Positions 60,346 through 62,521 of a DNA stretch of 64,000 nt are shown here, in pieces. Numbering within the stretch: the first letter of the stretch is position 1; each line of letters starts with the position of its first letter. The stretch lies in IMG/VR virus record IMGVR_UViG_3300005613_000002, positions 62,001 through 126,000 of that record. The stretch is one strand, 5' to 3'. A program made the position numbers and the translations under genes. The notes below the pieces were generated by a model. The model did no database searches. It was given only the letters and a program-made list of their open reading frames with translations, and was not told the origin of the DNA.

Positions 60346-60375
60346 TTGTATTTATGATTTTAATGCGTATATTTG
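60346..60375 (+). promoter_or_regulatory. Host-type promoter (with overlapping late motif) for the leader/tRNA operon
   Basis: TTG-N19-TATATTTG; GTATTTAT at 60348-60355. Confidence 0.75.
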
Positions 60376-60406: not shown

Positions 60407-60490
60407 ATGAAAAATTTAGTGAACATACAGCATCAACCCGTACAACATCCACAGGATATCGTTGAATGGGTAGATTATGTTCAAACTTAA
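60407..60490 (+). CDS. Attenuator leader peptide rich in Gln/His/Pro
   Basis: MKNLVNIQHQPVQHPQDIVEWVDYVQT*; 8 of 9 consecutive codons (60428-60454) are Q/H/P, matching the downstream tRNAs. Confidence 0.85.
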   Translation: MKNLVNIQHQPVQHPQDIVEWVDYVQT

Positions 60491-60520
60491 ATTTTTCCGA
60501 GAGAAGTTTTAATTTAGGGC

Positions 60521-60556
60521 AAAAAGTTCCATTCTATTTAGAGTGGAACTTTTTTT
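60521..60556 (+). terminator. Attenuator terminator upstream of the first tRNA
   Basis: AAAAAGTTCCATTCT-ATTT-AGAGTGGAACTTTTTTT; its 5' arm can alternatively pair with GAATGGG at 60464-60470. Confidence 0.85.
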
Positions 60557-60563
60557 GTTATAT

Positions 60564-60658
60564 CTGGGATTGAACGAGTGGTTGAAGTTACCAGCCTTGG
60601 AAACTGGTGAGGGCGATAAGATGGTTGTCCTCCGTGGGTTCGAACCCCACATCCCAGA
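60564..60658 (+). tRNA. tRNA-Pro(UGG) on a Ser-like class II scaffold
   Basis: Acceptor CTGGGAT/ATCCCAG, A73; anticodon arm CCAGC-CTTGGAA-ACTGG; 8-bp variable stem; T arm GTGGG-TTCGAAC-CCCAC. Confidence 0.8.
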
Positions 60659-60660
60659 CA

Positions 60661-60803
60661 AATGAATAATGGTAGTGTTAATATTATATATGGAGTAACT
60701 TGATGAATCCTTGAAGGAACGCTTGGTGAAAAATAGTAAAAGTATATAACAACAACACGCTAGTCGAAGATGACTGGAGTTATAGGCGAAAATCCTATTC
60801 ATT
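60661..60803 (+). ncRNA. tRNA-like structured ncRNA 1
   Basis: End pairing AATGA/TCATT; ATAATGGTA D-loop-like segment; long helix GTGTT..TTATATA/TATATAA..AACAC; hairpin CTAGTC/GACTGG; T-arm-like ATAGG-CGAAAAT-CCTAT. Confidence 0.55.
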
Positions 60804-60815
60804 GTTTATAAATAT

Positions 60816-60901
60816 GGTGATTGTTGCAGAGTGGTCAAATGCGCCAGATTGTGGTTCTGGTATCCGAAAGGATTTCGTGGGTTCGAAACCCATCATTCAC
60901 C
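60816..60901 (+). tRNA. tRNA-His(GUG) on a Tyr-like class II scaffold
   Basis: G-1:C73; anticodon arm CCAGA-TTGTGGT-TCTGG; variable arm ATCC-GAAA-GGAT. Confidence 0.85.
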
Positions 60902-60908
60902 CAAAAAT

Positions 60909-61021
60909 AATTAGTTACCCTGCTTGTTCCGTATGGGGTTATAAAAATACATCAATTAACGGAACTCATGATGGAGTCCTTGCCAAGAAAGTAGGATAAA
61001 GATGTTAGATATTAACTAATT
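60909..61021 (+). ncRNA. Structured ncRNA 2, possibly pseudoknotted
   Basis: Closing stem AATTAGTTA/TAACTAATT; GTTCCGT/ACGGAAC; TCCT/AGGA hairpin; loop ACATC can pair with GATGT. Confidence 0.5.
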
Positions 61022-61030
61022 TATAAATAT

Positions 61031-61105
61031 CGGGTAGTTATGCAGATGGCTATACAACGATGCCTTGGACGCATCGGTTCGCAGGTTCGAATCCTGCCTA
61101 TCCGA
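61031..61105 (+). tRNA. tRNA-Pro(UGG), atypical D arm, A37
   Basis: CGGGTAG/CTATCCG, A73; CGATGC-CTTGGAC-GCATCG; GCAGG-TTCGAAT-CCTGC. Confidence 0.75.
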
Positions 61106-61113
61106 CATAATAT

Positions 61114-61186
61114 AGAGTAGTAGCGCAGTTGGTAGCGTACTGCATTTGGGATGCAGGGGTCGCAGGTTCAAGTCCTGTCTACTCTA
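61114..61186 (+). tRNA. tRNA-Pro(UGG), class I, G37
   Basis: AGAGTAG/CTACTCT, A73; CTGCA-TTTGGGA-TGCAG; canonical D and T arms. Confidence 0.88.
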
Positions 61187-61188
61187 CT

Positions 61189-61260
61189 GTGTTAGTAGCA
61201 TAACTGGCTAATGCGCCACACTGTGAATGTGGAGAATAGGGTTCGAGTCCCTCTAACACC
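61189..61260 (+). tRNA. tRNA-His(GUG), class I, A37, 4-bp T stem
   Basis: GTGTTAG/CTAACAC, C73; CCACA-CTGTGAA-TGTGG; AGGG-TTCGAGT-CCCT. Confidence 0.8.
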
Positions 61261-61266
61261 CAACTT

Positions 61267-61350
61267 AGTCCTATGGTGGAATTGGTAAACACATCGTCCT
61301 TTGAAGGCGACACCCGAAAGGGTTTGTAGGTTCGAGTCCTACTAGGATTG
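61267..61350 (+). tRNA. tRNA-Gln(UUG) on a Leu-like class II scaffold
   Basis: AGTCCTA/TAGGATT, G73; D arm GTGGAATTGGTAAACAC; TCGTC-CTTTGAA-GGCGA; variable arm ACCC-GAAA-GGGT. Confidence 0.85.
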
Positions 61351-61383
61351 CAAAAGTGTGAAAAACATACTTTATTAAGACGA

Positions 61384-61471
61384 AAGAAGATTCAGAGATG
61401 GTTGACATTCATGTAACCAATAGCTCGATAATGGTAGGGTTATAGTGAAAAGTGATAATAATCTTCTTCCA
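61384..61471 (+). ncRNA. Structured ncRNA 3 ending in CCA
   Basis: Closing stem AAGAAGATT/AATCTTCTT + CCA; hairpin TGGTT-G-ACAT/ATGT-AACCA; ATAATGGTAG shared with ncRNA 1. Confidence 0.5.
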
Positions 61472-61505
61472 ATATGAAGTACAAGTATTGGATAGTCTTT
61501 TTTAT

Positions 61506-61580
61506 TGCCCATTGGTGTAATTGGCTAACACATCTGATTTTGATTCAGAAGACTTATAGGTTCGAATCCTATATGGGCAA
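61506..61580 (+). tRNA. tRNA-Gln(UUG), class I, A37
   Basis: TGCCCAT/ATGGGCA; TCTGA-TTTTGAT-TCAGA; ATAGG-TTCGAAT-CCTAT. Confidence 0.9.
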
Positions 61581-61633
61581 CTTTTCTCTTGCTACTTATT
61601 ATTTTTTTAATTATATTTATGAAAAATATAATT

Positions 61634-61832: not shown

Positions 61833-62117
61833 ATGATTTACAAACTAAAACATGTTCCAACTGGTTTATATTATCAACCACATAGACATCGAGGTAGCAA
61901 TTTAAGTAAAAGAGGTAAAATTTATCAAACTTCTACTCATGGTCTATCATCAGCATTTAAAAATAAAAGAGCAACATTTACTGTTTATTGTGAAAAAGAT
62001 AGTCGCATATATAAATTATGTAATAATATTTTAAATTTCGAAGATTATAGATTTTCATATAATCAAGTAAAAGCTGAAACAAAAGTAAGTGATTGGATAA
62101 TTGAAGAAATTAAATAA
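61833..62117 (+). CDS. Hypothetical protein
   Basis: 94 aa, YKLKHVPTGLYY...LSKRGKIY. Confidence 0.65.
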   Translation: MIYKLKHVPTGLYYQPHRHRGSNLSKRGKIYQTSTHGLSSAFKNKRATFTVYCEKDSRIYKLCNNILNFEDYRFSYNQVKAETKVSDWIIEEIK

Positions 62118-62122
62118 AAACA

Positions 62123-62521
62123 ATGAAATATAATTTATTCTTAGATGATGTTAGAAACCCGATTGATTGTGTATACTACATGTATACACCAATATATACT
62201 AGTGTTGACTGGGTGATAGTTAGAGATTATAATTCTTTTATTAAAATAATTAAAGAAAATGGTTTACCTGAAATAATCTCCTTCGATCATGATTTATCTG
62301 ATGAACATTATGACCCAAAAATGTATCATGAATCATATGATGAATTATATGATTCATTTAAAGAAAAAACTGGTTACGAATGTGCTAAATGGTTGGTAGA
62401 TTATTGTATTGATAATAATGAATTTCTACCAAAAAAAATATTAGTACATTCAATGAATCCTATTGGTAGACGAAATATTGAGTCTTATTTCGAATCATAT
62501 AATAAATCATTAAAATTATAG
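62123..62521 (+). CDS. Cyclic-phosphate-processing receiver (cREC)-domain protein
   Basis: LFLDD.R.P, ISFDHDL, KTGYECAKWL and VHSMNP.G motifs. Confidence 0.75.
   Translation: MKYNLFLDDVRNPIDCVYYMYTPIYTSVDWVIVRDYNSFIKIIKENGLPEIISFDHDLSDEHYDPKMYHESYDELYDSFKEKTGYECAKWLVDYCIDNNEFLPKKILVHSMNPIGRRNIESYFESYNKSLKL

Follow-up and report, generated by a model that had tools for sequence, protein, structure and literature searches.

A tRNA operon of a 322-kb phage that mostly carries A in place of G37

Introduction

In ribosome-mediated transcription attenuators such as trpL, hisL, leuL, ilvL, pheL and the pheST leader, a short ORF carries a run of regulatory codons, an intrinsic terminator lies before the controlled genes, and a strand inside or near the ORF can pair with the 5' arm of the terminator. 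Such leaders are known to respond to loss of m1G37, the methylation introduced by TrmD at a G37 that follows G36, since unmethylated G37 lowers ProRS charging and de-attenuates leuL and ilvL (PMC8384417). In trmD-deficient E. coli, G36-A37 variants arise when Arg tRNAs are recoded to CCG, and these bypass the deficiency (Clifton et al., 2021, PMC8643618). Phage tRNAs with anticodon-loop substitutions at nuclease sites, evading host tRNA nucleases, are an established idea (van den Berg et al., 2023, PMC10264068).

Here we analyzed a 64,000-nt stretch (hereafter the window) of the IMG/VR virus record IMGVR_UViG_3300005613_000002 (positions 62,001 to 126,000), which contains a block of tRNA genes for Pro, His and Gln. 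A first-pass annotation, made from the sequence alone, had pointed out that all seven anticodons end in G36, that five of the tRNAs have A37, and that the codons of a preceding leader all start with C, and had inferred that the shared vulnerability of this trio might be the G36-G37 motif, either as a nuclease target or through loss of methylation, which the A37 variants would bypass.

Results

Seven tRNA genes behind a leader ORF

The observation on the tRNAs proved correct. ARAGORN and Rfam RF00005 both find seven tRNAs (Pro x3, His x2, Gln x2; Table 1), with Rfam scores of 34.4-67.8 bits, all above the gathering score of 29, and position 37 is A or G exactly where the annotation had placed it. 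Only the first His and the third Pro tRNA carry the G36-G37 motif of TrmD substrates. Of the nine control codons of the leader, however, eight are CAN or CCN and one GTA interrupts the run. CCC makes up 2.2% of the phage's Pro codons and CAG 10% of its Gln codons, whereas CCA/CCT, CAT and CAA are used almost exclusively.

TABLE 1. Features of the Pro/His/Gln tRNA block and its surroundings, in window coordinates.
Position	Strand	Feature	Details
60368..60375	+	TATATTTG, Bacteroidota-type -7 promoter element (TAnnTTTG)	39 nt upstream of the leader ATG; the same motif lies 56-73 nt before the other three leaders; genome-wide frequency 0.0008 per nt
60407..60490	+	Leader ORF MKNLVNIQHQPVQHPQDIVEWVDYVQT	P/H/Q are 9 of 26 residues against a 7.6% background; conserved in at least 10 related phages
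60428..60454	+	Control codons 8-16	CAG CAT CAA CCC GTA CAA CAT CCA CAG
60463..60471	+	Putative antiterminator strand UGAAUGGGU	Can pair with the 5' arm of the terminator (7 bp, -8.5 kcal/mol, weak in this phage); sequestered by the control-codon region in the free RNA
60521..60561	+	Intrinsic terminator	15-bp hairpin plus T-run, 3 nt before the first tRNA
60564..60659	+	tRNA-Pro(UGG), 96 nt	Loop CTTGGAA, A37 at 60601; long variable arm; C1-G72/A73
60660-60816		Spacer	Not conserved in eight relatives
60816..60902	+	tRNA-His(GUG) (60817-60902 with encoded G-1 at 60816)	Loop TTGTGGT, identical to the host loop, G37 at 60854; long variable arm (GAAA tetraloop)
60903-61030		Spacer	Not conserved in eight relatives
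61031..61106	+	tRNA-Pro(UGG)	Loop CTTGGAC, A37 at 61069; C1-G72/A73 as in host tRNA-Pro; 3' half 85-89% identical to tRNA-Pro of T5-like, rV5-like and FelixO1-like phages
61114..61187	+	tRNA-Pro(UGG)	Loop TTTGGGA, identical to the host loop, G37 at 61150; A1-U72
61189..61261	+	tRNA-His(GUG)	Loop CTGTGAA, A37 at 61226; no encoded G-1 (T at 61188)
61267..61351	+	tRNA-Gln(UUG), 85 nt	Loop CTTTGAA, A37 at 61304; long variable arm (GAAA tetraloop)
61352-61505		Spacer	Not conserved in eight relatives; the only notably structured spacer (z=-3.1)
61506..61581	+	tRNA-Gln(UUG)	Loop TTTTGAT, the host loop TTTTGGT with only G37 changed to A; A37 at 61543
62123..62521	+	cREC_REC (cyclic-phosphate-processing receiver) domain protein	Family linked to RNA repair; PF20274, E=1.2e-23

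Four tRNA blocks with matching leaders

The grouping of Pro, His and Gln as an odd trio comes from the window edge, since the window stops inside a 37-kb tRNA island of a complete 321.6-kb jumbo myophage with about 46 tRNAs and a tmRNA. The island holds four tRNA blocks, each following a promoter, a short leader ORF and a terminator, and each leader is rich in exactly the amino acids whose tRNAs follow (whole-peptide enrichment p=8e-5 for the Q/H/P leader and p=5e-4, 4e-3 and 1.4e-6 for the others). The three further leaders, for D/E/L/V/A/W/M, for K/Y and for C/I/S/N/F/G/T/R, would sense codons starting with G, A and U. All four leader types recur before the same tRNA sets in eight relatives, and the Pro/His/Gln block and its leader are conserved as a unit in all relatives examined, with synonymous and order changes in the leader.

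Antiterminator duplexes beat shuffled sequences for three of the four leaders, but not for the Q/H/P leader of this phage (shuffle p=0.16). In relatives, GAATGGGG is an 8-nt exact repeat of the terminator 3' arm, which is conserved in a different reading frame in G004 (genomes of our comparison are given as G numbers) and covaries in the sister phage G006 (GAACGGGG with CCCCGTTC), indicating conservation at the RNA level. Equilibrium folding with a simulated stalled ribosome always keeps the very stable terminators, and the antiterminators show only in truncated, co-transcriptional-style folds. We also tested whether the conserved CCC-C in the leaders of relatives would let a +1 shifted ribosome run into the terminator, but the +1 frame stops at inconsistent places, and before the terminator in this phage, so that frameshift sensing was rejected.

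A likely host among Bacteroidota

Several lines of evidence point to Bacteroidota as the likely, though only inferred, host phylum. Only 2 of 196 ORFs have a Shine-Dalgarno-like motif, the -14 to -10 region is A-rich and -3 is usually A, TAnnTTTG motifs precede all four leaders, most non-G36 anticodon loops are identical to Bacteroidota loops, and the nearest cultured major capsid protein is from a Flavobacterium phage. Host identification through mis-binned contigs, in contrast, gave inconsistent labels (Paceibacterota, Bacteroidales and Terriglobales).

The first-pass annotation had named A37 in host His and Gln tRNAs as part of what would refute its interpretation, but this is not the case in the sampled Bacteroidota, where G37 is found in His (29/29), in all Pro sampled, and in Gln(UUG) in nearly all matches in 112 of 121 genomes. 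The Gln figure stems from a pattern search, since a BLAST search with a host Gln tRNA reached only 6 of 61 genomes. A phage-like Gln query found no host tRNA. Arg-ACG, Arg-CCG, Leu-UAG and Leu-GAG are also G37 in a 31% GC Bacteroidales MAG.

A37 after G36 across the phage and its relatives

G36 is automatic for Pro, His and Gln tRNAs, and five A37 out of seven is not unusual against this phage's own set, where 39 of 46 tRNAs have A37, but it is unusual against the probable host phylum. Across the genome 8 of 10 G36 tRNAs carry A37, including Leu(aag), Arg(gcg) and Arg(tcg) in other operons of the island, and A37:G37 among G36 tRNAs is 7:2, 11:2, 10:2, 5:1, 7:2 and 6:3 in six relatives. The phage differs from host position 37 almost only in this class, as 2/7 G36 tRNAs but 24/27 other tRNAs are the same as in the host (Fisher p=0.0035), and pooled over seven phages the figures are 14/54 against 172/185. 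The pattern is not without exceptions: nearly every relative keeps a host-like G37 tRNA-Pro, so that G37 copies are not purged, G006 has G37 in all 14 G36 tRNAs and G007 in 10 of 14, and T4 and Cellulophaga phage phi17:2 use G37. The Q/H/P leader also exists, unchanged, in G006, and the putative attenuator is therefore not tied to A37.

The A37 tRNAs keep the cloverleaf through 13-19 compensatory pairs across relatives, with 97-99% of cells paired, and the A37 Pro tRNAs have host-like acceptor identity, which contradicts the possibility that they are decayed pseudogenes. AT mutational pressure as the cause of A37 was likewise rejected, as there is no correlation with island GC content (41% in G013 with A37:G37 of 10:2, 27% in G007 with 4:10). 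A phage-encoded TrmD does not explain the difference between G37-rich and A37-rich phages either, since no PF01746 match was found in G000, G004, G005, G006, G007 or G013, and no phage gene was found that bears on TrmD or on S-adenosylmethionine supply. The single radical-SAM ORF (genome 222577-222840, 240 aa) is too small to suggest an RlmN-type enzyme.

The same A37 in Pro and Leu(UAG) occurs in unrelated cultured phages, namely T5-like BF23, GAP31, Wc4 and Vibrio phage D419, whose enterobacterial and Vibrio hosts use m1G37 there. The long-arm tRNA-Pro had no match in the cultured-phage collection.

Discussion

What the sequences establish is that the region is the first of four tRNA operons in the island, that its genes carry Bacteroidota-type expression signals, that each operon consists of a promoter, a leader ORF built from codons for the amino acids whose tRNAs follow, an intrinsic terminator and tRNA genes, and that the A37 bases are one instance of a class-wide rule, by which in this phage and most of its relatives tRNAs with G36 (Pro, His, Gln, Leu-CUN, Arg-CGN) carry A37 where the likely hosts carry G37, while one host-like G37 copy of Pro, and often of His, is kept. 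The function of these elements, on the other hand, is inferred from sequence alone. In our view the leader would act by classical ribosome-mediated attenuation, in which a shortage of charged Pro-, His- or Gln-tRNA stalls the ribosome on codons 8-16, frees the GAAUGG(G) strand to pair with the 5' arm of the terminator and lets RNA polymerase read on into the tRNA genes. The replacement of G37 would remove the motif that TrmD must methylate, so that the phage-made tRNAs would not depend on host m1G37 methylation, unmethylated G37 tRNAs being poorly charged and prone to frameshifting. We regard this combined reading as tentative (probability roughly 0.45), also because positions 32 and 38 usually change together with 37, which is more than bypassing TrmD would need.

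The interpretation of the first-pass annotation is thus supported in part: a link to the TrmD motif is plausible, but a special vulnerability of Pro, His and Gln as the reason for their grouping behind a leader sensing only C-starting codons, although the block is conserved as a unit, is already contradicted by the A37 tRNAs of other operons, the three other leaders and the presence of the leader in the all-G37 phage.

Alternatively, a host anticodon nuclease or another tRNA-targeting defence might recognise loops of the host type (U32, G36-m1G37, Y38), and the phage might supply resistant replacements with C32/A37/A38 loops, switched on through the attenuator when the host tRNAs disappear. 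Induction on demand would fit a sudden depletion of tRNAs, the island carries a T4 Rnl1-type RNA ligase, a P-loop kinase-like protein, methyltransferases and the cREC_REC protein, which together look like a tRNA-repair kit, and positions 32, 37 and 38 flip together, and repeatedly, in two His lineages, which looks like an arms race. We nevertheless consider it unlikely, although our data do not separate a nuclease target from loss of methylation: no nuclease specific for G36-G37 or m1G37 is known to us or turned up in the papers we read, the retained G37 copies with host-identical loops would be as vulnerable as the host tRNAs, a change spanning five amino-acid families defined only by G36 matches the TrmD determinant better than any characterised nuclease, and the same A37 occurs in phages of very different hosts. 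Slightly less likely still is decoding tuning or tolerated drift, by which gene conversion, duplication and anticodon remoulding within a dense tRNA array, together with tuning of loop strength for A/U-ending codons, would spread A37 with no link to TrmD or defence, C32-A37-A38 being the generic loop frame of most tRNAs in the island. CTNNNAA is indeed the commonest loop of the phage, its codon usage would fit, and mixed intermediate loops exist (CTGTGGA, TTTTGAA, CTTTGGA). However, the lack of correlation with GC content, the near restriction of the departure from the host to the G36 class, the retention of A37 through extensive compensatory evolution and its independent origin in unrelated phage families all speak against it.

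It is possible to speculate further, although we consider this unlikely, that these jumbo phages run a demand-driven tRNA replacement system, in which four attenuators each sense depletion of the very tRNA species their operon encodes, and in which the replacements for all C-starting codons have been rebuilt as G36-A37, often with C32/A38 and sometimes on a long-arm scaffold, so as to work when the host's m1G37-bearing tRNAs are disabled, either by a defence nuclease reading the G36-m1G37 loop or by collapse of TrmD or S-adenosylmethionine-dependent methylation during infection.

If the main reading holds, phage tRNA genes would be regulated, switched on when the matching host tRNA runs short, rather than simply expressed, which bears directly on the long-running question of why phages carry tRNAs. 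Avoidance of G37 after G36 would be a general design rule of phage tRNAs, also seen in T5-like and other model phages, tying them to an essential bacterial enzyme and antibiotic target and yielding natural tRNA-Pro variants that should work without m1G37. Both ideas are accessible in tractable systems, such as T5 or BF23 in E. coli and reporters in Flavobacterium or Bacteroides.

Comparison With Described Systems

With the attenuators of the trpL and leuL kind the locus shares the short ORF with its run of regulatory codons and the terminator before the controlled genes, and a putative antiterminator strand may pair with the terminator's 5' arm, though the predicted pairing is weak in this phage. 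It differs in that tRNA genes rather than biosynthetic or synthetase genes would be controlled, in that several amino acids would be sensed at once, matched to a multi-tRNA operon, in the presence of four such units in one phage, and in its Shine-Dalgarno-less, Bacteroidota-type setting, and we found no paper describing such an arrangement.

As in the phage tRNAs discussed by van den Berg et al. (2023, PMC10264068), the phage copies differ from host tRNAs inside the anticodon loop and tRNA-repair genes lie nearby, but the change is class-wide and sits at position 37, the TrmD target, rather than at a known cleavage site, and no cognate nuclease is known. The variants of Clifton et al. (2021, PMC8643618) likewise read C-starting codons with A37 and work without m1G37, yet they stem from laboratory evolution of Arg tRNAs by anticodon mutation, whereas natural phage tRNAs are involved here, including tRNA-Pro, whose G37 is otherwise nearly universal.

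The tRNA sets of T5-like phages (BF23), Vequintavirinae (GAP31) and Ounavirinae (Wc4) share A37 in Pro(UGG) and Leu(UAG) (loops CTTGGAT, CTTAGAA) as well as the similarity in the 3' half of tRNA-Pro (Table 1), but differ in that their hosts already have A37 in His and Gln. Finally, like type II tRNAs (Leu, Ser, bacterial Tyr) and allo-tRNAs with long variable arms, three of the seven tRNAs (60564, 60817 and 61267) have a long arm, with a 3-bp D stem, an 11-nt D loop and a 4-9-bp variable-arm hairpin, but they do not qualify as type II tRNAs, since the anticodons and acceptor-end identity marks are those of Pro, His and Gln (C1-G72/A73 for Pro; G-1/C73 for His). The arm loops are GAAA tetraloops.

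The Pro/His/Gln tRNA block and its leader

ARAGORN and Rfam agree on seven + strand tRNA genes between 60564 and 61581, three for Pro(UGG), two for His(GUG) and two for Gln(UUG), and their anticodon loops show A at position 37 in five and G in two, exactly as described in the first-pass annotation. Upstream lies a 27-codon ORF, whose codons 8-16 read CAG CAT CAA CCC GTA CAA CAT CCA CAG, followed by a 15-bp hairpin plus T-run. The initial observation is thus confirmed, except that one GTA codon interrupts the run of codons starting with C.

Features of the tRNA block, of the surrounding island and of the rest of the genome. Window coordinates refer to bases 62001-126000 of the virus record; L271 and L272 are further stretches of the same genome, outside the window (L271:653 is genome 126653, L272:532 is genome 146532).
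Feature	Window	Genome or stretch	Strand	Remarks
Leader ORF	60407-60490			27 codons
Hairpin plus T-run	60521-60561			15 bp
tRNA-Pro(UGG)	60564-60659		+	A37; type II shape
tRNA-His(GUG)	60817-60902 (60816 counting the encoded G-1)		+	G37; loop TTGTGGT; type II shape
Spacer 2	60903-61030			80% identical over 84 nt to an uncultured 636-kb phage (LR756504)
tRNA-Pro(UGG)	from 61031		+	A37
tRNA-Pro(UGG)	from 61114		+	G37; loop TTTGGGA
tRNA-His(GUG)	61189-61261 (T at 61188)		+	A37; no G-1 encoded
tRNA-Gln(UUG)	61267-61351		+	A37; type II shape
Spacer 3	61352-61505			strongly structured (z=-3.1), ends in a T-run
tRNA-Gln(UUG)	61506-61581		+	A37
tRNA island		122.5-159.6 kb		37 kb
Further leader ORF plus terminator unit		L271:653-766 (genome 126653-126766)
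Further leader ORF plus terminator unit		L271:11005-11085 (genome 137005-137085)
Further leader ORF plus terminator unit		L272:532-669 (genome 146532-146669)
tRNAs of type II shape for Trp, Cys, Asn and Met		130867 (Trp), 146751 (Cys), 147846 (Asn), 43835 (Met)
Second tRNA-Asp		127057-127129		T37; loop CTGTCTA
tmRNA		L271:6007-6369 (genome 132007-132369)		Rfam 94 bits
tRNA with anticodon CTA		L272:13544-13617 (genome 159544-159617)		amber suppressor type
T4 Rnl1-type RNA ligase, two methyltransferases, P-loop kinase-like protein, YqeY-domain protein and cREC_REC protein	62123-62521	L271:9768-10856, L271:8222-9762, L272:2487-2912, L272:5676-6074
TnpB/IS605 OrfB-like gene		L271:15835-17133		Cas12f1-like TNB domain
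Odd tRNA-like genes		129984-130057, 151233-151303, 137366-137450, 148146-148268		one with a 6-nt and one with an 8-nt anticodon loop; two Rfam tRNA matches with insertions, not called by ARAGORN

Three of the seven tRNAs, like those for Trp, Cys, Asn and Met elsewhere in the genome, are built on a type II shape, with a 3-bp D stem and a long variable-arm hairpin that often carries a GAAA tetraloop, although their acceptor ends fit the anticodon; this shape is conserved in relatives. The His lineage to which tRNA-His 61189 belongs also lacks an encoded G-1 in the related phages G004, G005, G006 and G007, while 27 of 28 sampled host His genes encode it. Neither spacer 2 nor spacer 3 is conserved in the eight close relatives.

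Genomic context and probable host

The window is part of a complete 321,624-bp virus record with direct terminal repeats. Its GC content is 27.5%, and it encodes tail sheath, major head, portal and terminase proteins, which identifies it as a myophage. The seven tRNAs form the first block of a tRNA island with 44 tRNAs for all 20 amino acids, a CTA suppressor tRNA and a tmRNA, and the impression of an odd Pro/His/Gln trio is therefore largely an effect of the window edge. TAG still ends 14 of 200 long ORFs, so that this simple count gives no sign of recoding. The RNA ligase, the methyltransferases, the P-loop kinase-like, YqeY-domain and cREC_REC proteins together look like a tRNA-repair and tRNA-handling kit; the TnpB/IS605 OrfB-like gene also lies inside the island, and HNH and GIY-YIG endonuclease-like genes lie between tRNAs. 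The phage belongs to a large family of 300-365-kb uncultured phages with major capsid protein identities of 73-88%, and all relatives examined carry the same Pro/His/Gln block. The second tRNA-Asp with T37 is conserved across relatives as well (G020, G010 and contig C135 of G021).

We take the host phylum to be Bacteroidota with good, though not full, confidence. Only 2 of 196 long ORFs have a Shine-Dalgarno-like motif, the upstream regions are A-rich at -14 to -10 and -3 is usually A, and the motif TAnnTTTG precedes all four leaders described below. Most non-G36 anticodon loops are identical to Bacteroidota loops, and the nearest cultured capsid relative is a Flavobacterium phage at 40% identity. 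Labels from mis-binned contigs, however, were inconsistent. One GenBank record labelled as a Candidatus Paceibacterota MAG scaffold (JBAZIW010000001.1, 362,763 bp) has the same length and the same capsid-gene range as the IMG/VR phage genome G005, and is evidently a phage and not a bacterial scaffold.

Matched leader ORFs precede four tRNA blocks

Each of the four tRNA blocks is preceded by a promoter motif, a short ORF and a strong terminator, and each ORF is enriched in the amino acids whose tRNAs follow, as tested on whole peptides without a chosen core.

Amino-acid enrichment of the four leader peptides.
Leader	Enriched amino acids	Count	p	tRNAs that follow
1	P, H, Q	9/26	8e-5	Pro, His, Gln
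2	D, E, L, V, A, W, M	23/37	5e-4	Asp, Glu, Leu, Val, Ala, Trp, Met
3 (MKTNKTYYGYKSYKK...)	K, Y	9/25	4e-3	Tyr, Lys
4	C, I, S, N, F, G, T, M, R	36/44	1.4e-6	Cys, Ile, Ser, Asn, Phe, Gly, Thr, Met, Arg

In each leader a segment 16-22 nt before the stop codon is complementary to the 5' arm of the terminator. For leaders 2-4 this predicted pairing is far better than in shuffles, and it forms in folds of transcripts truncated before the 3' arm, whereas for leader 1 it is weak (-8.5 kcal/mol, p=0.16). Comparative data improve the case for leader 1: in relatives the ORF contains GAATGGGG, an exact copy of the 3' arm of the terminator, G004 conserves this string in a different reading frame, and G006 changes it to GAACGGGG together with a change of CCCCATTC to CCCCGTTC in the terminator. 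All four leader types recur before the same tRNA sets in eight relatives. We found no paper describing leader-peptide control of phage tRNA operons. That every sensed codon starts with C, as the first-pass annotation had stressed, therefore simply reflects which tRNAs sit in this operon, and the set of four matched, putative attenuators is the larger finding.

Position 37 in tRNAs with G36

Within the phage 39 of 46 tRNAs have A37, so that five of seven is not an enrichment in itself. What is unusual is A37 after G36, which is found in eight of the ten G36 tRNAs, including Leu(aag), Arg(gcg) and Arg(tcg) in other operons. Among the G36 tRNAs of the relatives the ratio of A37 to G37 is 7:2 in G004, 11:2 in G005, 10:2 in G013, 5:1 in G003, 7:2 in G010, 6:3 in G002, 4:10 in G007 and 0:14 in G006, without correlation with GC content.

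In sampled Bacteroidota, tRNA-His has G37 in 29/29 genomes and tRNA-Pro in every case. Gln(UUG) has G37 in almost all real-looking matches from 112 of 121 genomes, while two genomes have A37, and a Bacteroidales MAG of 31% GC has G37 in Arg-ACG, Arg-CCG, Leu-UAG, Leu-GAG and Pro-GGG. The circumstance named beforehand as speaking against a TrmD-linked reading, namely that host His and Gln tRNAs already have A37, therefore does not apply to the likely host. Position 37 equals that of the host in 24/27 non-G36 tRNAs but in only 2/7 G36 tRNAs (Fisher p=0.0035), and pooled over seven phages the figures are 172/185 against 14/54.

The loops of the two G37 tRNAs of the window are identical to host loops, and Gln 61506 has the host loop with only G37 changed to A, while the other A37 loops also change positions 32 and 38. 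The A37 tRNAs are under structural selection, with 13-19 compensatory pairs, and the A37 Pro tRNAs carry the host C1-G72/A73 marks. In two His lineages the G37 and A37 states flip repeatedly among phages.

Why G37 may be avoided

The class defined by the change, G36, is exactly the determinant of TrmD (PMC8643618). Unmethylated G37 lowers charging by ProRS and stalls ribosomes, and loss of m1G37 opens the leuL and ilvL leaders (PMC8384417), whereas A37 Arg tRNAs recoded to CCG rescue trmD-deficient E. coli (PMC8643618). We therefore tentatively favour independence from methylation, with a probability of about 0.45. While the arrangement of the four blocks with their matched leaders and the occurrence of A37 after G36 are shown by the sequences, both attenuation and independence from TrmD are inferred. 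Escape from a nuclease is the rival reading, which we consider less likely; it draws on the T4 Rnl1-type RNA ligase, the kinase-like protein, the methyltransferases and the cREC_REC protein in or beside the island, and on the coordinated changes at positions 32, 37 and 38. Against both models speak the retention of host-like G37 copies and G006, which is entirely G37. No phage trmD was found in the six phage genomes searched. The interpretation offered by the first-pass annotation is thus partly supported: a link to the G36-G37 motif is plausible and now backed by host and family data, but its framing as a vulnerability specific to Pro, His and Gln is wrong.

A37 after G36 in cultured phages

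The 3' half of the A37 tRNA-Pro matches tRNA-Pro genes in 510 cultured-phage records. Avoidance of G37 was not discussed in the papers we searched and read. Among the cases checked, T4 and Cellulophaga phage phi17:2 keep G37, whereas the T5-like phage BF23, Cronobacter phage GAP31, Pectobacterium phage Wc4 and Vibrio phage D419 have A37 in both Pro(UGG) and Leu(UAG), and G37 avoidance is thus recurrent but not universal.
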